A DNA stretch of 63,593 bases, filler included, from Olpidium bornovanus S191 (Eukaryota > Fungi > Olpidiomycota): assembly GCA_017911155.1 (NCBI GenBank). It is 29 parts of 29 records of this genome, joined end to end, with 100 filler letters (N's around TTAATTAATTAA, not from the genome) between each part and the next. Parts side by side here need not be neighbours in the genome. Positions count along the whole stretch, not along the records: positions 39,133 to 41,455 come from JAEFCI010010577.1; positions 41,556 to 45,843 come from JAEFCI010011124.1; 27 more parts are not named here. One strand, given 5' to 3'. How positions within the stretch are numbered: position 1 is the stretch's first letter; every line of letters starts with the position of its first letter. A program made the translations under genes and the position numbers. The notes under the pieces were generated by a model. That model made no database searches. It saw only the letters and a program-made list of their open reading frames with translations, and was not told the DNA's origin. Below are positions 41,354-46,162 of the stretch, piece after piece.

Positions 41354-41926
41354 CGACGTGGATTCGTCGTGTTTGGTGAGGCTATAAATGTAGATATCAG
41401 GTGGGGGGGGGGGCGATTCATCGTCCCTAGCAACGGCTACATTATTGGCCGGCTCNNNNNNNNNNNNNNNNNNNNNNNNNNNNNNNNNNNNNNNNNNNNT
41501 TAATTAATTAANNNNNNNNNNNNNNNNNNNNNNNNNNNNNNNNNNNNNNNNNNNNACAACTGTTCTACTTGGATGGAATTGTAAACGCGGCAGATTCAGG
41601 TGGGGCTGCGATCGACGCCGACACCGATCCCGACTCCACCGTCAGGACCAACGGCGTTGATGACAGTGCCCTCATGGTGACCATCAAGAGCGACATCGAC
41701 GAATGGCGTGCGCGATTGGGGCACCTTGGGCAGGCTAAGATGCGCCTCCGGCAGCAACAGGCAGAGGGAGAGATACCCAGAGCCTGCCTCTGGGCGCAAA
41801 ACGCCACGATGTGCGAACCTTGCCAACTCGGCAAACAGACGCGAAAGTCGCACCTGCCAAGCGGCAGCGCGCCCTCTAAGACAGACGAAGACGTCCATGT
41901 GGACCTGACTGTTGCGCATCAAAAGC

Positions 41927-41998
41927 AGGTTGACCGAGGGTTGAACTCAAGACCTTCCCTTTCCCGGAGGGACGCTCTTCCAACTGAGCTATCTGCCC
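41927..41998 (-). ncRNA. tRNA-derived module in the 3' LTR (Pol III A and B boxes)
   Basis: GGGCAGA TA GCTC AGTTGGAA GAGC G TCCCT CCGGGAA AGGGA AGGTC TTGAG TTCAACC CTCGG TCAACCT; perfect D-stem and anticodon stem. Confidence 0.88.
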
Positions 41999-42156
41999 TA
42001 TTCACCAAGTGTCTGGCTCGCCCTGCAACGCCATTCCAACACCCCCCTCGAGCCAGGCACCTCAGGCACTGCTGTCAACGGGGCTCGGCCACCCGCGCAA
42101 CCACAATCGGAGGGACAAGTCACGATTGGGCTGATAACCTGTTGCGCATCAAAAGT

Positions 42157-42228
42157 GGGCCGACCGAGCGTTGAACTCGGGACCTTCTTTTTCCCGGAGG
42201 GACGCTCTTCCAACTGAGCTATCTGCCC
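42157..42228 (-). ncRNA. tRNA-derived module in the 5' LTR (Pol III A and B boxes, TTTT terminator 2 nt downstream)
   Basis: GGGCAGA TA GCTC AGTTGGAA GAGC G TCCCTCCGGGAAAAAGA AGGTC CCGAG TTCAACG CTCGG TCGGCCC ACTTTT; perfect D- and T-stems, 6/7 acceptor pairs. Confidence 0.88.
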
Positions 42229-43291
42229 TATTCACCAGGTGTCTGGCTCGCCCTGCAAAGCCATTCCAACACTGACCAGGCCTTGCCCGATTTCTGTCCA
42301 CGGCAACAAGTACGCCATGACCTGCGTCGGGCCCGAAGAGGCGGGCTAGAAAGCTACTTCGTGCAGTCAAAGGACAGCACGTTAATGCAGGCGGCCATGA
42401 AGGACTACTTACCGCACGTGGAAAAGCACGGATTCACCATCCGCACGCACCCCTCCGACCGAGGCAGAGAGTTCATGAGCGACGCATATCAAATGATGCT
42501 ACGGAACAAAGGGGATTCGCATCGAAATTACCGCGCGCCGAAACCCCACAGCAAAATGAAGTCGCCGAGCGTATCAGGTCGAGCCGCGGAACGCTCTTGT
42601 GCGCGCTCCGCAGCCTGGAGTTGCCCCTTTGTGGAATAATATAACCTTTGGTTCCCCTCATGGGAAACGGGCCAAGAGCAGACGGCGACGCCGGACGCCA
42701 CATCCGGGATACGGTCTTCTTCCTGCTCTTCCTCCTCACGGGCTCGCGCGTACTCCTCCCTTCCGGCTTTACCGTTCACCCCCCGCTCCTGCAGAAAAAG
42801 CAAACGAGGGGGGGGGGAATTGGGAGCTCGCCAGCCCCTGTCCTTTCGTTCTAGAGCCCTTAGTAGACGCCCCACGATGAAAAAACCTGAGGTAGATCGT
42901 GGGCGCCATACCTCGAACACAACCTCTTTTTTTCGCCTACTTCTTAACTGGCTCGCTGCGCCCGCTGCGCGTTCCCGTCCTTCCTTTCCTTCTCGGCTCC
43001 TGAATCCAACAACACCGTCCCTCCCCTCCCCCTCCTCCCCTACCCAGCCAGATCCGTCCACACAGACCAGAAATCACCGCAGAGCACCTAACGTGGCCTA
43101 TGCATCGGTCATCACAGGGTCAAAGTGCTGCATACGTAGCATTCATCATTTTCAGAGAAGGGCAAAAAAAGTTTTTACCGCTCAAACTGGACTAGTCCGG
43201 GAAAGGCGAACGAAACTTTCCGCGGACGTGGGAAACATGGCTTTACATAGGAGACGTGGAAAAGCGATAAAGAGCCCTGACATCGAAAAAC

Positions 43292-43343
43292 GTGGGCAAA
43301 AGAACCTCAGAATAAGGGTGGGCAAAAGAACCTCAGAATAAGG
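43292..43343 (+). repeat. 26-bp exact tandem duplication
   Basis: GTGGGCAAAAGAACCTCAGAATAAGG x2. Confidence 0.95.
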
Positions 43344-43390
43344 GGGCCGGTGATGATGTAGCGGCGGGGATGAAGAGGCGAGCTGGAAAC

Positions 43391-45008
43391 CTAGTCCTCG
43401 CGGGAAGAAGCCTCTTTCATCTTCTTGACCTCCTCGTCCTCGCCGGGGAGTTGCTCTGCCTTACGCTTGACGCTGCCGGCGGAGCTGGCGCTGGGAGTGT
43501 TCGCGGCATCGGACTGGGCGAGCCGCTTGGCAAGGAACTCGGCGGCATCCGTCTTCCGCGACTGAATCATGTCGGCGGCAGTTCCGGCAAGCGAGTCTTC
43601 TGCTGCGAGCGTGTTAACCGAGGGAGCCTCCTTGAGCTCCTTGATCTGCAGGTCGCATTCCGGCGTTCGGAAATAGTCAGATTCGGCCTCTGCAGTGAAA
43701 CCAGAGAGTAGCAACACCAACAGACACAGCCACGGAATCAAAAACGACCTTCGCCTCCAAGTCAGGGGTAAGCTCCATGATCTCCTTGATCTCGACATCT
43801 TTGTCATGGGCGACCTGGACTTCACCGGAGGATAGGAGCTTGACGCGCTGTTTAAGGACCTCGATGGCCTTTTCGACTTCCTCGACTGCTTTGTCACGCG
43901 AATTGTCCCACTCAAGCGCGTTCGCCAGCTTGAAGTGGACATAAGCGATCGCACGGTCCGTGGCCGGGTAGACTTTCTTTGCCATCTCGAGGGCGGAGGA
44001 GAAGTCGGAGGCGGCGCGAGCGAAATCCTCTGCAAAGACCCGCGGAGGCGCACAAGGGCGAGTGGCGGGAGAGCACACAGGGATAGAGAATGTAAGATGA
44101 ACATGTGCCGATAAACTGCGTGACGGACGCAAACCCCTTCCCCTCCCCCTTTTTCCCAAAATTATGCGCACCGCTTTCGAGTGAGACGTCTCCGAGGAGC
44201 ATGTGGGCGTCAATGAGCATTTTCTGGGCCGCGTCGCCCTCCATCTTGGCAAGGATAATGCGCGCAGTGTCGAGGATCTCAAAAGCGGTTTGAAGATCGT
44301 CCTTCTTCTCGTCCTCGCCCGCCCCCTCCTCCTCCTCGCCGTCCTCCTCCTCCTCCTCGCCGGCCGCCTCTTCGCGTTCAGCGTTCGGCTCGGACTCGGC
44401 GGGGGTGTCCTTGTCAAGTTCGACCTCCTTGGTGGCTGCTTCAGCAGACGCGTCACCAGCGCCAGAGCTGGCGTTTTTCTGCTGCGCGGCCAGCCCGAAG
44501 AGGGCGCGGCCGTACATGAGAAGAGTTTTGGCGCATTTGGGCGAAAGCGGCCCATAAGCGTTAGCTCTGTGTGGGAGGAACGGGAGACGGCAGGGAAAGC
44601 GAAACGTCACGAAACGACGGGAACCGTCAGATATTCTCCGACCACCCTGAAGCGGACGGGCCGGCTCAACGGACCGGGGGGAAAGTAGCCTTGCCAAAGG
44701 ACCGCATCCAGTTGACAGGGGAAAAAAAAAACAAAAGCCGCGCGCTCGACTTACAGCAGCTCTGAAGCCTCCGACAGCTTCTCGACGGCCTCCGCAAAGT
44801 TCTCGGCGGCAAGCGCGCTTTCGGCGGCGGAGAGCAGGGCGGGGAGAGCGCCGAGCGCCTCGCGTTCCTTGGCTGTGGGTTCCTTTTCCGCAACATCCGA
44901 AGCCGGCTCCTCGGAGGCGGGGATTTCCTCCGCGACCTTGGCAGGGGCCTGCTTCACGGGCGCGGCGGCGTCCTGCGCGGCAACCTCAACGGGGCCCTCG
45001 ACGGTCAT
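43391..45008 (-). CDS. NASP/Sim3/Hif1-family histone chaperone (SHNi-TPR), apparently complete, 4 exons
   Basis: TPR1 (ENFAEAVEKLSEASELL|ANAYG..YGRAL); acidic insert; DDLQTAFEILDTARII..HMLLGDVSLES|EDF..A..DF; basic C-terminal NLS VKRKAE..KKMK. Confidence 0.92.
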
Positions 45009-46162
45009 GCTGGATGCACGCGTCCGTGGGTTCGCAGGCTACAGTGGCGCGAACGACGTAAACGGAGGGAGAGGGGATGTTGAGAGGGGGGGGAGCGGGT
45101 GGTTGTTCGCGAGCGGAAAAGTGAGAGGGTTAGAAGGACGGGACGGCAACGTGACGCGTTGCTTTTTCCCGTCGAAGGCAGTGCAAAATTGATCCGAGGC
45201 GAGGTGCGTGGAAACAACCGGCCGAAAATCAGAAAAAGAAAGCGAGAAAAAAAAAACAAAAAAGACGAACGGCCGCGCAACGCGCCTCAAGATCCCTCCA
45301 TCCCACCACACCATCCCCTCCTCCCGTTTCCCTTGACGCCTAGCAGGGCATCCGGCGCGCGCAGTTTTTGGGACGCGCGTGGCGTCCACCCGCGCGGGGA
45401 AGAGGCCGAGGGGGGGGGAAGTGGAAGAGGGGAGGGAAGGGGGCAAAGGACGTGGTCAGCCCGGTCCGCGACTCACCGTTGTCTTTTTATTTCTCGATCT
45501 TTTTTTATTTTTTTTTTTTTTTTCCTGCCAAGGCAGTGGTAGTAGTTCTGGCGCGTCGTGTGAGCGGGTCGGGTCGTTCGGGCGCGGCGGTGTGTCTCTG
45601 TCTCTCTCTCTCTCTCTCTCTCCGCCTCTTCCCTCTCTTCTGTTGTGGGCACTTCCCCTCTCTCCCCTTCTTCCCCCCCCCCCTTTCCCCCTTCCCGCTT
45701 CCCCTTTCCCCTCCCCAGGTGAAGAAAGAGAAAACGACAACATCTGGACCATGTGTGGCACGTGATTTGCCATCGGAAACCAACCAAAAGAGCAGAAAAA
45801 AAGAACAAGTTCATCTTCGGCATGACAGCAGACACCCTTGCACNNNNNNNNNNNNNNNNNNNNNNNNNNNNNNNNNNNNNNNNNNNNTTAATTAATTAAN
45901 NNNNNNNNNNNNNNNNNNNNNNNNNNNNNNNNNNNNNNNNNNNCATGGGCCTGACCAGGTGTTTGCCTTATACGGAAAACGACAGAACACTGGGAAGCCC
46001 TGCGTTTCCCCCAAAAAAAGTTTCCCACAGAGAGCTCATTTTCGGGCACACAATGAGGTGACAAAGTTACGGGGCAGTCCGCGCGTGGCGCCGGCCCCTT
46101 TCGCCCACCGCCTCCCCCTCCTCCCAGGGTTGCGGAGAACCGCCGGCTTGCACAAATGTCTT

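Follow-up and report, generated by a model that had tools for sequence, protein, structure and literature searches.

The closest described relatives of the element reported here are the Helenus TRIMs, miniature LTR retrotransposons with tRNA-like LTRs that produce 5-bp TSDs in fungi (Kojima 2024, PMC10886601). Fungal Helenus elements have LTRs of 106-284 bp, internal parts of 51-354 bp and total lengths of 311-724 bp; their published hosts are confined to Pucciniales and three Agaricomycetes, and their Pol III transcription is described as unvalidated (PMC10886601). Cassandra, a plant TRIM of 565-860 bp, carries 5S rRNA in its LTR in the account of Kalendar et al. (2008) as cited in PMC10886601. 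In Ty5 and Drosophila copia, whose primer is initiator tRNA-Met, the PBS pairs not with the 3' end of the tRNA but with its anticodon stem-loop region (PMC10886601, section 3.6). The tRNA-derived SINEs (SINE2) are a further class of short, non-coding elements with a tRNA-derived internal Pol III promoter that are mobilized in trans.

We have identified, in the fungus Olpidium bornovanus S191 (Olpidiomycota), an LTR retrotransposon of 362 bp that is non-coding and whose LTRs each contain a tRNA-derived sequence, probably a Pol III promoter. The window in which it was found, i.e. the whole stretch of DNA analysed, comprises 63,593 nucleotides, filler included; the sense strand of the TRIM is the minus strand of the window, and the features of the element lie on that strand. 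Two direct repeats of 132 bp, the 5' LTR at 42140..42271 (TGTTG..CAACA) and the 3' LTR at 41910..42041 (TGTTGG...GCAACA), are 92% identical, and their alignment contains 11 differences, of which nine are transitions and two transversions. They enclose a non-coding internal part of 98 bp (42042..42139) that begins directly after the 5' LTR with the PBS GGTTATCAGCCC (42128..42139), one base off the family PBS GGTTATGAGCCC, and ends directly 5' of the 3' LTR with the PPT GAGGGGGG (42042..42049). Abutting the LTR ends are the two copies of a perfect 5-bp TSD, CTGAC, at 41905..41909 and 42272..42276. In each LTR, a 43-nt U3-like head with no TATA motif is followed by a 73-nt tRNA-derived unit, a T-run and a tail of 11 nt that closes with CA. 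No open frame inside the TRIM is gene-like or exceeds 88 codons, and an Rfam scan of the element at E ≤ 1 returned tRNA only and no 5S rRNA.

The TRIM splits a decayed Ty1/copia integrase on the plus strand (41557 to approximately 42640), in which the HHCC region and the DDE core are interrupted by stops and frameshifts. When the TRIM and one TSD copy were removed in silico, a single frame was restored (...VHVDLTRPCPISVHGNKYAMTCVGPEEAG*). The flanks matched two Pfam models below their cut-offs, namely gag_pre-integrs (E 4.5e-6, 26.8 bits against a cut-off of 28.4) and rve (E 0.0034, 18 bits against 32.6), and positions 42417-42471 of the integrase share 85% DNA identity with the end of another Olpidium contig (L004). 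A NASP-like gene, whose best protein match has 36% identity and which matched no protein from Olpidium, is a neighbour of the TRIM. A preliminary description drawn from the window alone had proposed the paired LTRs with their 11 differences, the 98-bp spacer with PBS and PPT, the CTGAC duplication and the repaired integrase frame, as well as a tRNA-shaped unit with A box, B box and TTTT on the sense strand of each LTR; the architecture was borne out to the base, the frame is single, and the units score 43.8 and 42.3 bits against the Rfam tRNA model.

Further copies were the test that the preliminary description had set beforehand, and they were found at several places. Olpidium contigs were reached by translating the reading frames of the TRIM and searching predicted proteins, and only three genomic loci were fully readable: the one in the window and those in two further O. 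bornovanus contigs, L002 (JAEFCI010007190.1) and L003. L002 contains a second full-length copy that is 87% identical, has different flanks and its own perfect 5-bp TSD, GTCAG, and shares its contig with a paralogous empty site. L003 contributes a third LTR with an internal part, and the internal part is approximately 90% conserved in L002 and L003. Additional variants were recovered in contigs of two transcript assemblies, where the flanks differ between TRIM copies and the unmatched sequence starts exactly at 42140 and 42271, the edges of the 5' LTR. All other copies seen have C at plus-strand position 42133 of the PBS, or read GGTTATGAGC, and the PPT reads AAAGGGGGG in L002 and GAGAGGGGG in L003. 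The TRIM thus belongs to a mobile family with several copies that differ in flanks and TSDs. The majority of matches in an exhaustive protein search, being long proteins of low complexity, were dropped as compositional noise. A 23-mer spanning the U3/tRNA junction had a sole match in a metagenome scan (L001), which proved to be the tRNA-Phe gene of a bacterium, set in AT-rich DNA, and was discarded as a chance match. As a negative control, a degenerate 33-mer of the U3 head gave no matches in bacterial and archaeal genomes. The 30-nt loose end of a longer relative (X10, at 42112) was not found in the fetched loci.

The tRNA-like units occupy 42156..42228 in the 5' LTR (42.3 bits, E 8.7e-7) and 41926..41998 in the 3' LTR (43.8 bits, E 3.5e-7), and both are called tRNA-Pro with anticodon GGG by ARAGORN. 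The covariance-model check suggested beforehand was positive for every copy: all five genomic LTRs exceed the RF00005 gathering score of 29, with the remaining three at 36.4, 32.7 and 50.7 bits (the last in L003). The A box TAGCTCAGTTGG, at 42221..42210 and 41991..41980, fits the Helenus box A pattern TRGCY + YGG. The B box, at 42178..42168 and 41948..41938, reads GAGTTCAAC in the window LTRs and takes the forms GAGTTC(A/G)AC or GAGTTTGAC across copies, the base before GTTC being A, not G. A TTTT run follows just past the unit in the 5' LTR (42151..42154, read off the sequence) and one base past it in the 3' LTR (41921..41924), where it is a putative Pol III terminator at which R would end. 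The two window units had been described as decayed at different stems, and this is what we see: the acceptor stem is damaged in the 3' LTR, whose anticodon stem is intact, while the anticodon stem is damaged in the 5' LTR, whose acceptor stem still pairs at six of seven positions. Across the cloverleaf, 89% of cells pair in register, versus 25-49% when the partners are slid.

The element shares with Helenus (fungal families such as Helenus-4_PTrit, Helenus-2_CroRib, Helenus-10_CroRib and Helenus-1_AmAr) a length below 1000 bp, the absence of coding capacity, LTR, internal and total lengths of 132/98/362 bp that fall within the fungal range, TGTTG..CAACA termini, and a tRNA-like unit with both boxes that lies in the 3' half of the LTR, with a T-run and then a short tail behind it. 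It also shares the family PBS, which is that of most fungal Helenus families, a G-rich PPT, 5-bp TSDs, occurrence at several sites, and a Copia-type helper, here a candidate, with an unrelated LTR but a common PBS region. It differs in having a Phe-like D-arm and a CCGGGAA anticodon loop, and in residing in a GC-rich (59%) genome, whereas rust genomes are AT-richer. Eight TRIM-specific 9- to 13-mers, taken from both ends of the LTR, the anticodon loop, the variable arm, the junction of acceptor and A box, a D-loop variant, the ancestral B box and the PBS of the window copy, were all missing from the published Helenus consensus file, in which generic D-arm motifs and the B-box 11-mer GAGTTCAACCC were present. 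Table S1 of Kojima (2024) has no Olpidium entry, and by these motifs the consensus file contains no family identical to ours. The Helenus analogue that the preliminary description had named exists as described (Kojima 2024, PMC10886601). Its suggestion that family or host lineage may be new holds for both, as judged from the published Helenus set, but the kind itself is already published. What is new is therefore the host phylum, Olpidiomycota, and, relative to the published consensus file, the family; the principle is that of Helenus/TRIMp3. With Cassandra the element has in common a small-RNA gene in the LTRs and, as far as can be inferred for Olpidium, an internal Pol III promoter and terminator and mobilization in trans, but it is tRNA-derived and without the 5S-derived LTR sequence that marks Cassandra and Ajax, it has a fungal rather than a plant host, and it is shorter. 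SINE2 elements lack LTRs, PBS and PPT and use LINE machinery, whereas the Olpidium TRIM has the hallmarks of an LTR retrotransposon and a fixed 5-bp TSD.

The family PBS is complementary to the anticodon stem-loop of tRNA-iMet, the same target as in Ty5 and copia, which differ in being autonomous elements with Pol II LTRs. The internal parts of 50 published fungal Helenus elements begin with GGTTATGAGCC in the consensus file. In both L004 and L003, an LTR with the TATA-bearing motif TATATAGA is followed by the PBS of the TRIM family and then by a Gag ORF (Retrotrans_gag, E 2.4e-4, 21.7 bits, below the cut-off of 24.1), and we regard this Gag-coding element as a candidate Copia partner of the TRIM. 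L003 equals L004 plus exactly one unit of TRIM internal part and tRNA-LTR between two PBS copies, which is the arrangement that recombination at a shared PBS would give. With a common PBS and a recombinant joined at it, the two offer a concrete helper-parasite pair in which the packaging and copying of a Pol III-type TRIM by a Pol II-type Copia could be studied.

We consider it likely that the element is a Helenus-type TRIM that encodes nothing, relies on the Gag, reverse transcriptase and integrase of a Ty1/copia element and is driven by Pol III. In the 5' LTR, TFIIIC and TFIIIB would load onto both boxes, with Pol III starting at, or just before, the +1 G of the tRNA. The TTTT run of the 5' LTR precedes the PBS, so a full-length Pol III transcript needs read-through, and this run should stop part of the transcription before the PBS is reached. 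Some transcripts may leak past the short T4 run and continue through the PBS, internal part and PPT as far as the T-run in the 3' LTR, where they would stop. In such transcripts R would be the tRNA-like unit, and U5 would be very short. Minus-strand synthesis would be primed at the PBS by the 5' half of tRNA-iMet, the first strand transfer would proceed via the tRNA-like R, and the plus strand would be primed from the PPT, after which the copia integrase would insert the DNA by its TGTTG..CAACA ends and create the 5-bp TSD. Pol III initiation, the helper's identity and leakage past the T-run of the 5' LTR are inferred. The transcript-assembly contigs with LTR copies carry flanking sequence on both sides and so resemble read-through transcripts or DNA carry-over, not transcripts that start at the tRNA 5' end. 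Two raw RNA runs (X21 and X24) gave zero reads on the TRIM and equally zero on the expressed neighbour gene.

An alternative that we think unlikely is that this is a true but ordinary TRIM ('TRIMp2') in which the tRNA unit, a captured tRNA or a SINE fossil, is a passive passenger. The template RNA would be a Pol II product, whether of a weak LTR promoter or of read-through of host or copia transcripts. The reach of the transcript-assembly contigs into both flanks is consistent with this, as is the T-run straight after the tRNA, which would end Pol III transcription early. The B box is also mutated in all five genomic LTRs: C56 is changed to T in three and the adjacent G to A in the other two, both at one CpG. 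In addition, no compensatory base changes occur across the five LTRs, a small and closely related sample, and MFE folds of four units were no better than shuffles (z-scores of -1.2 to +1.0), so nothing shows selection on RNA structure. However, the canonical TTCGA core of the B box is retained in most transcript-assembly copies. All five LTRs agree throughout alignment columns 44-62, which cover the acceptor 5' half and the A box, and also in the T-run and tail (the T-run being T5 in L003), and among the transcript-assembly contigs no variants were listed in these regions, whereas the anticodon arm varies. A U3-like head of 43 nt without TATA, as against the TATATAGA motif in the LTR of the candidate partner, and the recurrence of the same layout in more than 100 independent Helenus families also speak against a passenger and for a Helenus-type, Pol III-driven TRIM.

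A further reading, distinctly unlikely in our estimation, is that a tRNA-bearing TRIM arose independently in this early-diverging zoosporic fungus and that L003 records template switching between TRIM and helper at the shared PBS. Were this so, the capture of Pol III promoters by TRIMs would be recurrent wherever Copia elements use priming by a tRNA-iMet half-molecule. The order in L003 (Pol II-type LTR, PBS, TRIM internal part, tRNA-LTR, PBS, Gag) would then reflect a template switch between co-packaged RNAs that puts a tRNA-LTR immediately in front of a coding Copia body, and by this route helper and parasite might exchange LTRs and promoters.

It is highly improbable that the units are dispersed functional tRNA-Pro-GGG genes carried along by local duplication, even though ARAGORN and Rfam call both window units tRNAs and the L003 copy reaches its high score. 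The loop has C33 where tRNAs have U, and the anticodon GGG is not known to be used by eukaryotes. An A5-G68 mismatch is common to all copies, the broken stems differ from copy to copy, and the anticodon arm of one copy has lost 4 nt; this is not the canonical cloverleaf with U33 and a standard anticodon that marks a functional tRNA gene. The shuffle-level folds argue in the same direction, as does the placement of the units, which always lie inside TG..CA repeats with PBS, PPT and TSD. An assembly or chance artefact, such as a collapsed or duplicated repeat, can practically be dismissed, in spite of a likely source assembly that is a short-read, metagenome-derived MAG of 13,695 contigs and of the unusual composite in L003, given the perfect TSD and the copia frame restored on excision, the independent second copy with its own TSD and paralogous empty site, the copies in unrelated sequencing runs that end at the same bases, and the 11 LTR differences, which an assembly duplication would not create.

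Returning to the element as a Helenus-type TRIM, both full-length copies are old, judged from the approximately 9% divergence between their own LTRs. In the window the divergence is 8.3% (K2P 0.09), with changes that are mostly C>T or G>A. The preliminary description had called the window copy intact, which holds for its architecture but not for its sequence; because its LTRs differ to this extent, its stems are broken and one base of its PBS is changed, it is an old insertion and probably no longer mobile. RIP-type CpA bias was set aside as the cause: the C>T and G>A excess lies at CpG rather than CpA, which fits cytosine deamination better.

Rusts and a few mushrooms were the only fungi in which Helenus/TRIMp3 elements had been known, and the Olpidium TRIM extends the kind to a lineage adjoining the terrestrial fungi. 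Either its age in fungi far exceeds the approximately 130 My that have been proposed for Pucciniales, or the design is readily re-invented. The Olpidium genome is phylogenetically important and poorly assembled, and would gain from TE-aware masking. Such masking would improve both tRNA and gene counts, since the units are called tRNA-Pro(GGG) and the public annotation of Olpidium already contains 'hypothetical protein' models (KAG5459221.1 and KAG5461470.1) that are spurious products of TRIM units.

The element lies on piece 41556-45843 of the window, where a repeat search returned one long direct repeat pair and base-by-base reading found the TRIM, a 362-bp non-coding LTR retrotransposon, at exactly the place assigned to it in the preliminary description. 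Its sense is that of the minus strand. By direct reading, a 98-bp spacer lies between two 132-bp LTRs with TGTTG..CAACA termini (41910-42041 and 42140-42271), and a 5-bp target site duplication (TSD), CTGAC, borders the pair on both sides (41905-41909 and 42272-42276), in agreement with the earlier description. Alignment of the LTR pair confirmed 11 differences, comprising 9 transitions and 2 transversions. [quoted passage not shown] Excision of the TRIM together with one TSD copy restores a single frame in which ...VHVDLT is joined to RPCPISVHGNKY..., as had been described. The flanks match two domains at scores under the Pfam cut-offs, GAG-pre-integrase (E 4.5e-6) and integrase core (E 0.0034), and show stops and frameshifts farther out. 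Based on the restored frame, the domain matches and this decay, the sequence hosting the TRIM is a decayed Ty1/copia integrase.

In order to find other copies, open frames of the TRIM were translated and compared with predicted proteins, and the contigs of matches were then fetched. Three "hypothetical proteins" of the O. bornovanus MAG assembly GCA_017911155.1 (13,695 contigs, 29 Mb) were matched, and the family is present in three O. bornovanus contigs at 87-91% identity. A second full-length copy, 87% identical over its whole length and with its own LTR pair, occupies positions 1662-2020 of JAEFCI010007190.1 (L002). It has the PBS GGTTATGAGCTC, the PPT AAAGGGGGG, flanks entirely unlike those in the window and a perfect 5-bp TSD, GTCAG (1657-1661 and 2021-2025). 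Elsewhere on this contig, the left flank has a paralogue (80% similar) with a single GTCAG and no TRIM, which constitutes a paralogous empty site. A third LTR with internal part occurs in JAEFCI010003604.1 (L003); its cloverleaf scores highest, at 50.7 bits, and has T5 after it. Contigs covering the LTR and internal part, with 5-23 differences from the window copy, were also found in two transcript assemblies from coded organism A; their unmatched flanks begin exactly at 42140 and 42271, each unlike the others. The spliced mRNA of the window's neighboring gene is present in these assemblies; no base is substituted across the exons, although 15 bases are missing from one contig. The lack of any other copy had been named as the chief ground for doubting the element; L002, L003 and the run contigs all hold copies, and the family is therefore real. 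GC content is similar between the O. bornovanus contigs and the window (52-64% vs 59%). Together with the shared TRIM family, a copia integrase fragment 85% identical to that of the window and the short contigs of the assembly, this points to O. bornovanus or a very close relative as the likely source of the window.

The window and L002 TSDs are reverse complements (chance ~2 in 1024) and both target sites read GGTCAG, which could be coincidental or a sign of weak target preference; the flanks of run-contig copies are unlike both target sites. One run contig matches the last ~70 internal bases and the LTR and then diverges, which suggests a longer relative; searching the fetched loci for the diverging end did not trace one. 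The "hypothetical protein" models KAG5459221.1 (L002:1657-2078) and KAG5461470.1 (L003:2603-3037) consist of translated TRIM sequence, from both LTRs and internal parts, and are annotation artefacts. Upstream of its TRIM copy, L002 contains a 25-bp A-rich minisatellite of ~10 units (1-270) and a ~345-bp tandem repeat present three times (270-1240).

Each window LTR contains a tRNA-like unit on the element's sense (minus) strand, at 41926-41998 and 42156-42228, scoring 43.8 and 42.3 bits, respectively, with the Rfam tRNA model (gathering score 29 bits). Both have box A TAGCTCAGTTGG, box B GAGTTCAAC and a TTTT one base beyond the unit's end, bearing out the earlier account of these signals. As also described, damage falls on different stems in the two copies. 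One LTR keeps a perfect anticodon stem while the other shows two mismatches there, and acceptor-stem pairing is 6/7 in one LTR and 4-5/7 in its partner. ARAGORN identifies both units as tRNA-Pro(GGG) and would call each LTR a tRNA-Pro gene. A role as working tRNAs was ruled out, as position 33 is a C, the anticodon GGG is not known to be used in eukaryotes, an A5-G68 mismatch occurs in every copy, and minimum-free-energy folds of the units were no more stable than those of shuffled sequences. A bacterial tRNA-Phe gene (L001:4395-4470) has a 23-nt stretch in common with the unit, 19/23 nt of which correspond to the acceptor and the 5' part of the D-arm, GGGCAGATAGCTCAGTTGG. This agrees with an earlier remark on a "Phe-like D-arm", but the match arose by chance and says nothing about origin.

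Conservation, substitutions and pairing were counted in an alignment of five genomic LTRs (the window pair, the L002 pair and the single L003 LTR). The 5' acceptor half with the A box (19 columns) is invariant, as are the T-run and LTR tail, and the variable sites lie in the anticodon arm and at two positions of the B box. The latter represent one CpG, with TTCAAC in window copies, TTTGAC in the other Olpidium copies and the canonical core TTCGAC in most run-contig copies; the direction of change at this CpG is opposite from copy to copy. A strong bias toward C>T or G>A is seen, with 29 of the 40 departures from the majority sequence being of this type, and there is an excess at CpG, with 11 departures on the nine CpG dinucleotides. 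The pattern is that of cytosine deamination, and suggests that repeats in the Olpidium genome are subject to cytosine methylation and deamination. The K2P divergence between paired LTRs is 0.090 in the window and 0.094 in L002, so both insertions are old, and the window copy is probably dead. Cloverleaf cells are paired in 89% of cases in register vs 25-49% with partners slid, and no compensatory change was seen at any cloverleaf pair in the five LTRs; this indicates an inherited cloverleaf, with no sign that it is being maintained. The PBS reads GGTTATGAGC(C/T)C in every other copy seen, and the window copy alone has C for G at the fourth-last anticodon-complement position.

The suggested resemblance to Helenus, with tRNA-like LTRs and a 5-bp TSD in fungi, corresponds to a published group that the TRIM fits in size, termini and TSD. 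Helenus forms TRIMp3 together with Cassandra and Ajax, and its TSDs are 5 bp in fungi and 4 bp in animals (Kojima 2024, PMC10886601). In fungi, published LTRs span 106-284 bp, internal parts 51-354 bp and whole elements 311-724 bp, ranges that include the 132, 98 and 362 bp of the Olpidium TRIM. Consensus LTRs read TGTTG...CAA(C/T)A, their 3' half being occupied by the tRNA-like part and a T-run after it, and 50 internal parts in the consensus file start GGTTATGAGCC and finish in a G-run (PMC10886601). The Olpidium TRIM has all of the defining features tested. However, its host falls outside the published fungal hosts, which are only Pucciniales and three Agaricomycetes, with no Olpidium entry (PMC10886601), and a literature search found no later paper widening the host range. 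Twelve short TRIM motifs were looked up in the consensus file. Eight, all TRIM-specific, were absent (LTR start, LTR end, anticodon loop, variable arm, acceptor/A-box junction, window D-loop variant, ancestral B box and the window copy's own PBS). The other four were present: the shared PBS of the family, two D-arm motifs of a generic kind, and GAGTTCAACCC, with a single occurrence, in a rust family. The Olpidium TRIM is a new family of a published element kind in a host phylum new among fungi.

Pol III drive set aside, the interpretation of the element as a TRIM is supported, and the TRIMp3 model is the best-supported reading of an element whose architecture, mobility, shared PBS and A-box conservation are shown here. 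Under this model, the tRNA-derived unit would serve as internal Pol III promoter and R region. Pol III would initiate transcription and leak past the T4 run of the 5' LTR, and the T-run of the 3' LTR would set the 3' end of the RNA. Priming by a tRNA-iMet half-molecule, the PPT and a Copia integrase would provide the remaining steps. Efficient termination by fungal Pol III generally takes five or more T, so the T4 run would be leaky; L003 has T5. The main rival is that the tRNA unit is a passive fossil and transcription occurs by Pol II or read-through, in favor of which transcript contigs with the TRIM LTR run on into flanks. Runs guessed to be "DNA?" (among X1, X10, X21 and X24) are transcript assemblies, since their contigs lack introns. 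Raw RNA runs from 2026 with the same species label gave no reads even on the expressed neighboring gene; the label may be that of a host, or the samples may be mixed, with the organism present only in some of them.

A candidate helper occurs in JAEFCI010001900.1 (L004), in which a ~165-bp segment starts TGTTGGAAA, contains TATATAGA and ends TTCA, and is followed by GGTTATGAGCCCAAC and by a Gag ORF whose Pfam match is under the cut-off (Retrotrans_gag E 2.4e-4). The last 55 nt are an integrase-core fragment matching the window's copia (85% identical). L003 has the L004 arrangement (first segment 84%, PBS identical, Gag 96%) plus exactly one 232-bp unit, consisting of TRIM internal part and tRNA-LTR, bounded by two copies of CAGGTTATGAGCCCAA. 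We read the first segment as a Pol II-type LTR from a Copia family; this family would have the PBS and terminal bases, not the LTR body, in common with the TRIM. The composite (L003:2337-2800 vs L004:566-805) thus runs putative Pol II-type LTR with TATATAGA, PBS, TRIM internal part, tRNA-LTR, PBS and Gag, and looks like a recombinant or template switch at the shared PBS. The overlap of 16 nt would be short for a mis-join in a de Bruijn assembly, but the composite may still be an assembly artefact.

The neighboring gene (43119-45039, minus strand) is expressed and encodes a NASP / SHNi-TPR-like histone chaperone of 394 aa after splicing. Its three GT..AG introns (44567-44754, 44030-44171 and 43646-43748) are all confirmed by spliced contigs from runs X1 and X10. 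The nearest database relative is only 36% identical over exon 2, and no Olpidium entry was among the protein's database matches; either this gene lacks an annotation or the window may derive from another assembly. Upstream of the gene, the divergent promoter region (45480-45700) has many homopolymer runs of T and of C and a (CT)n tract, and a new gene cut by the end of the piece possibly begins at ATG 45823. The 3' UTR region contains a perfect tandem 26-mer, GTGGGCAAAAGAACCTCAGAATAAGG, present twice (43292-43343).
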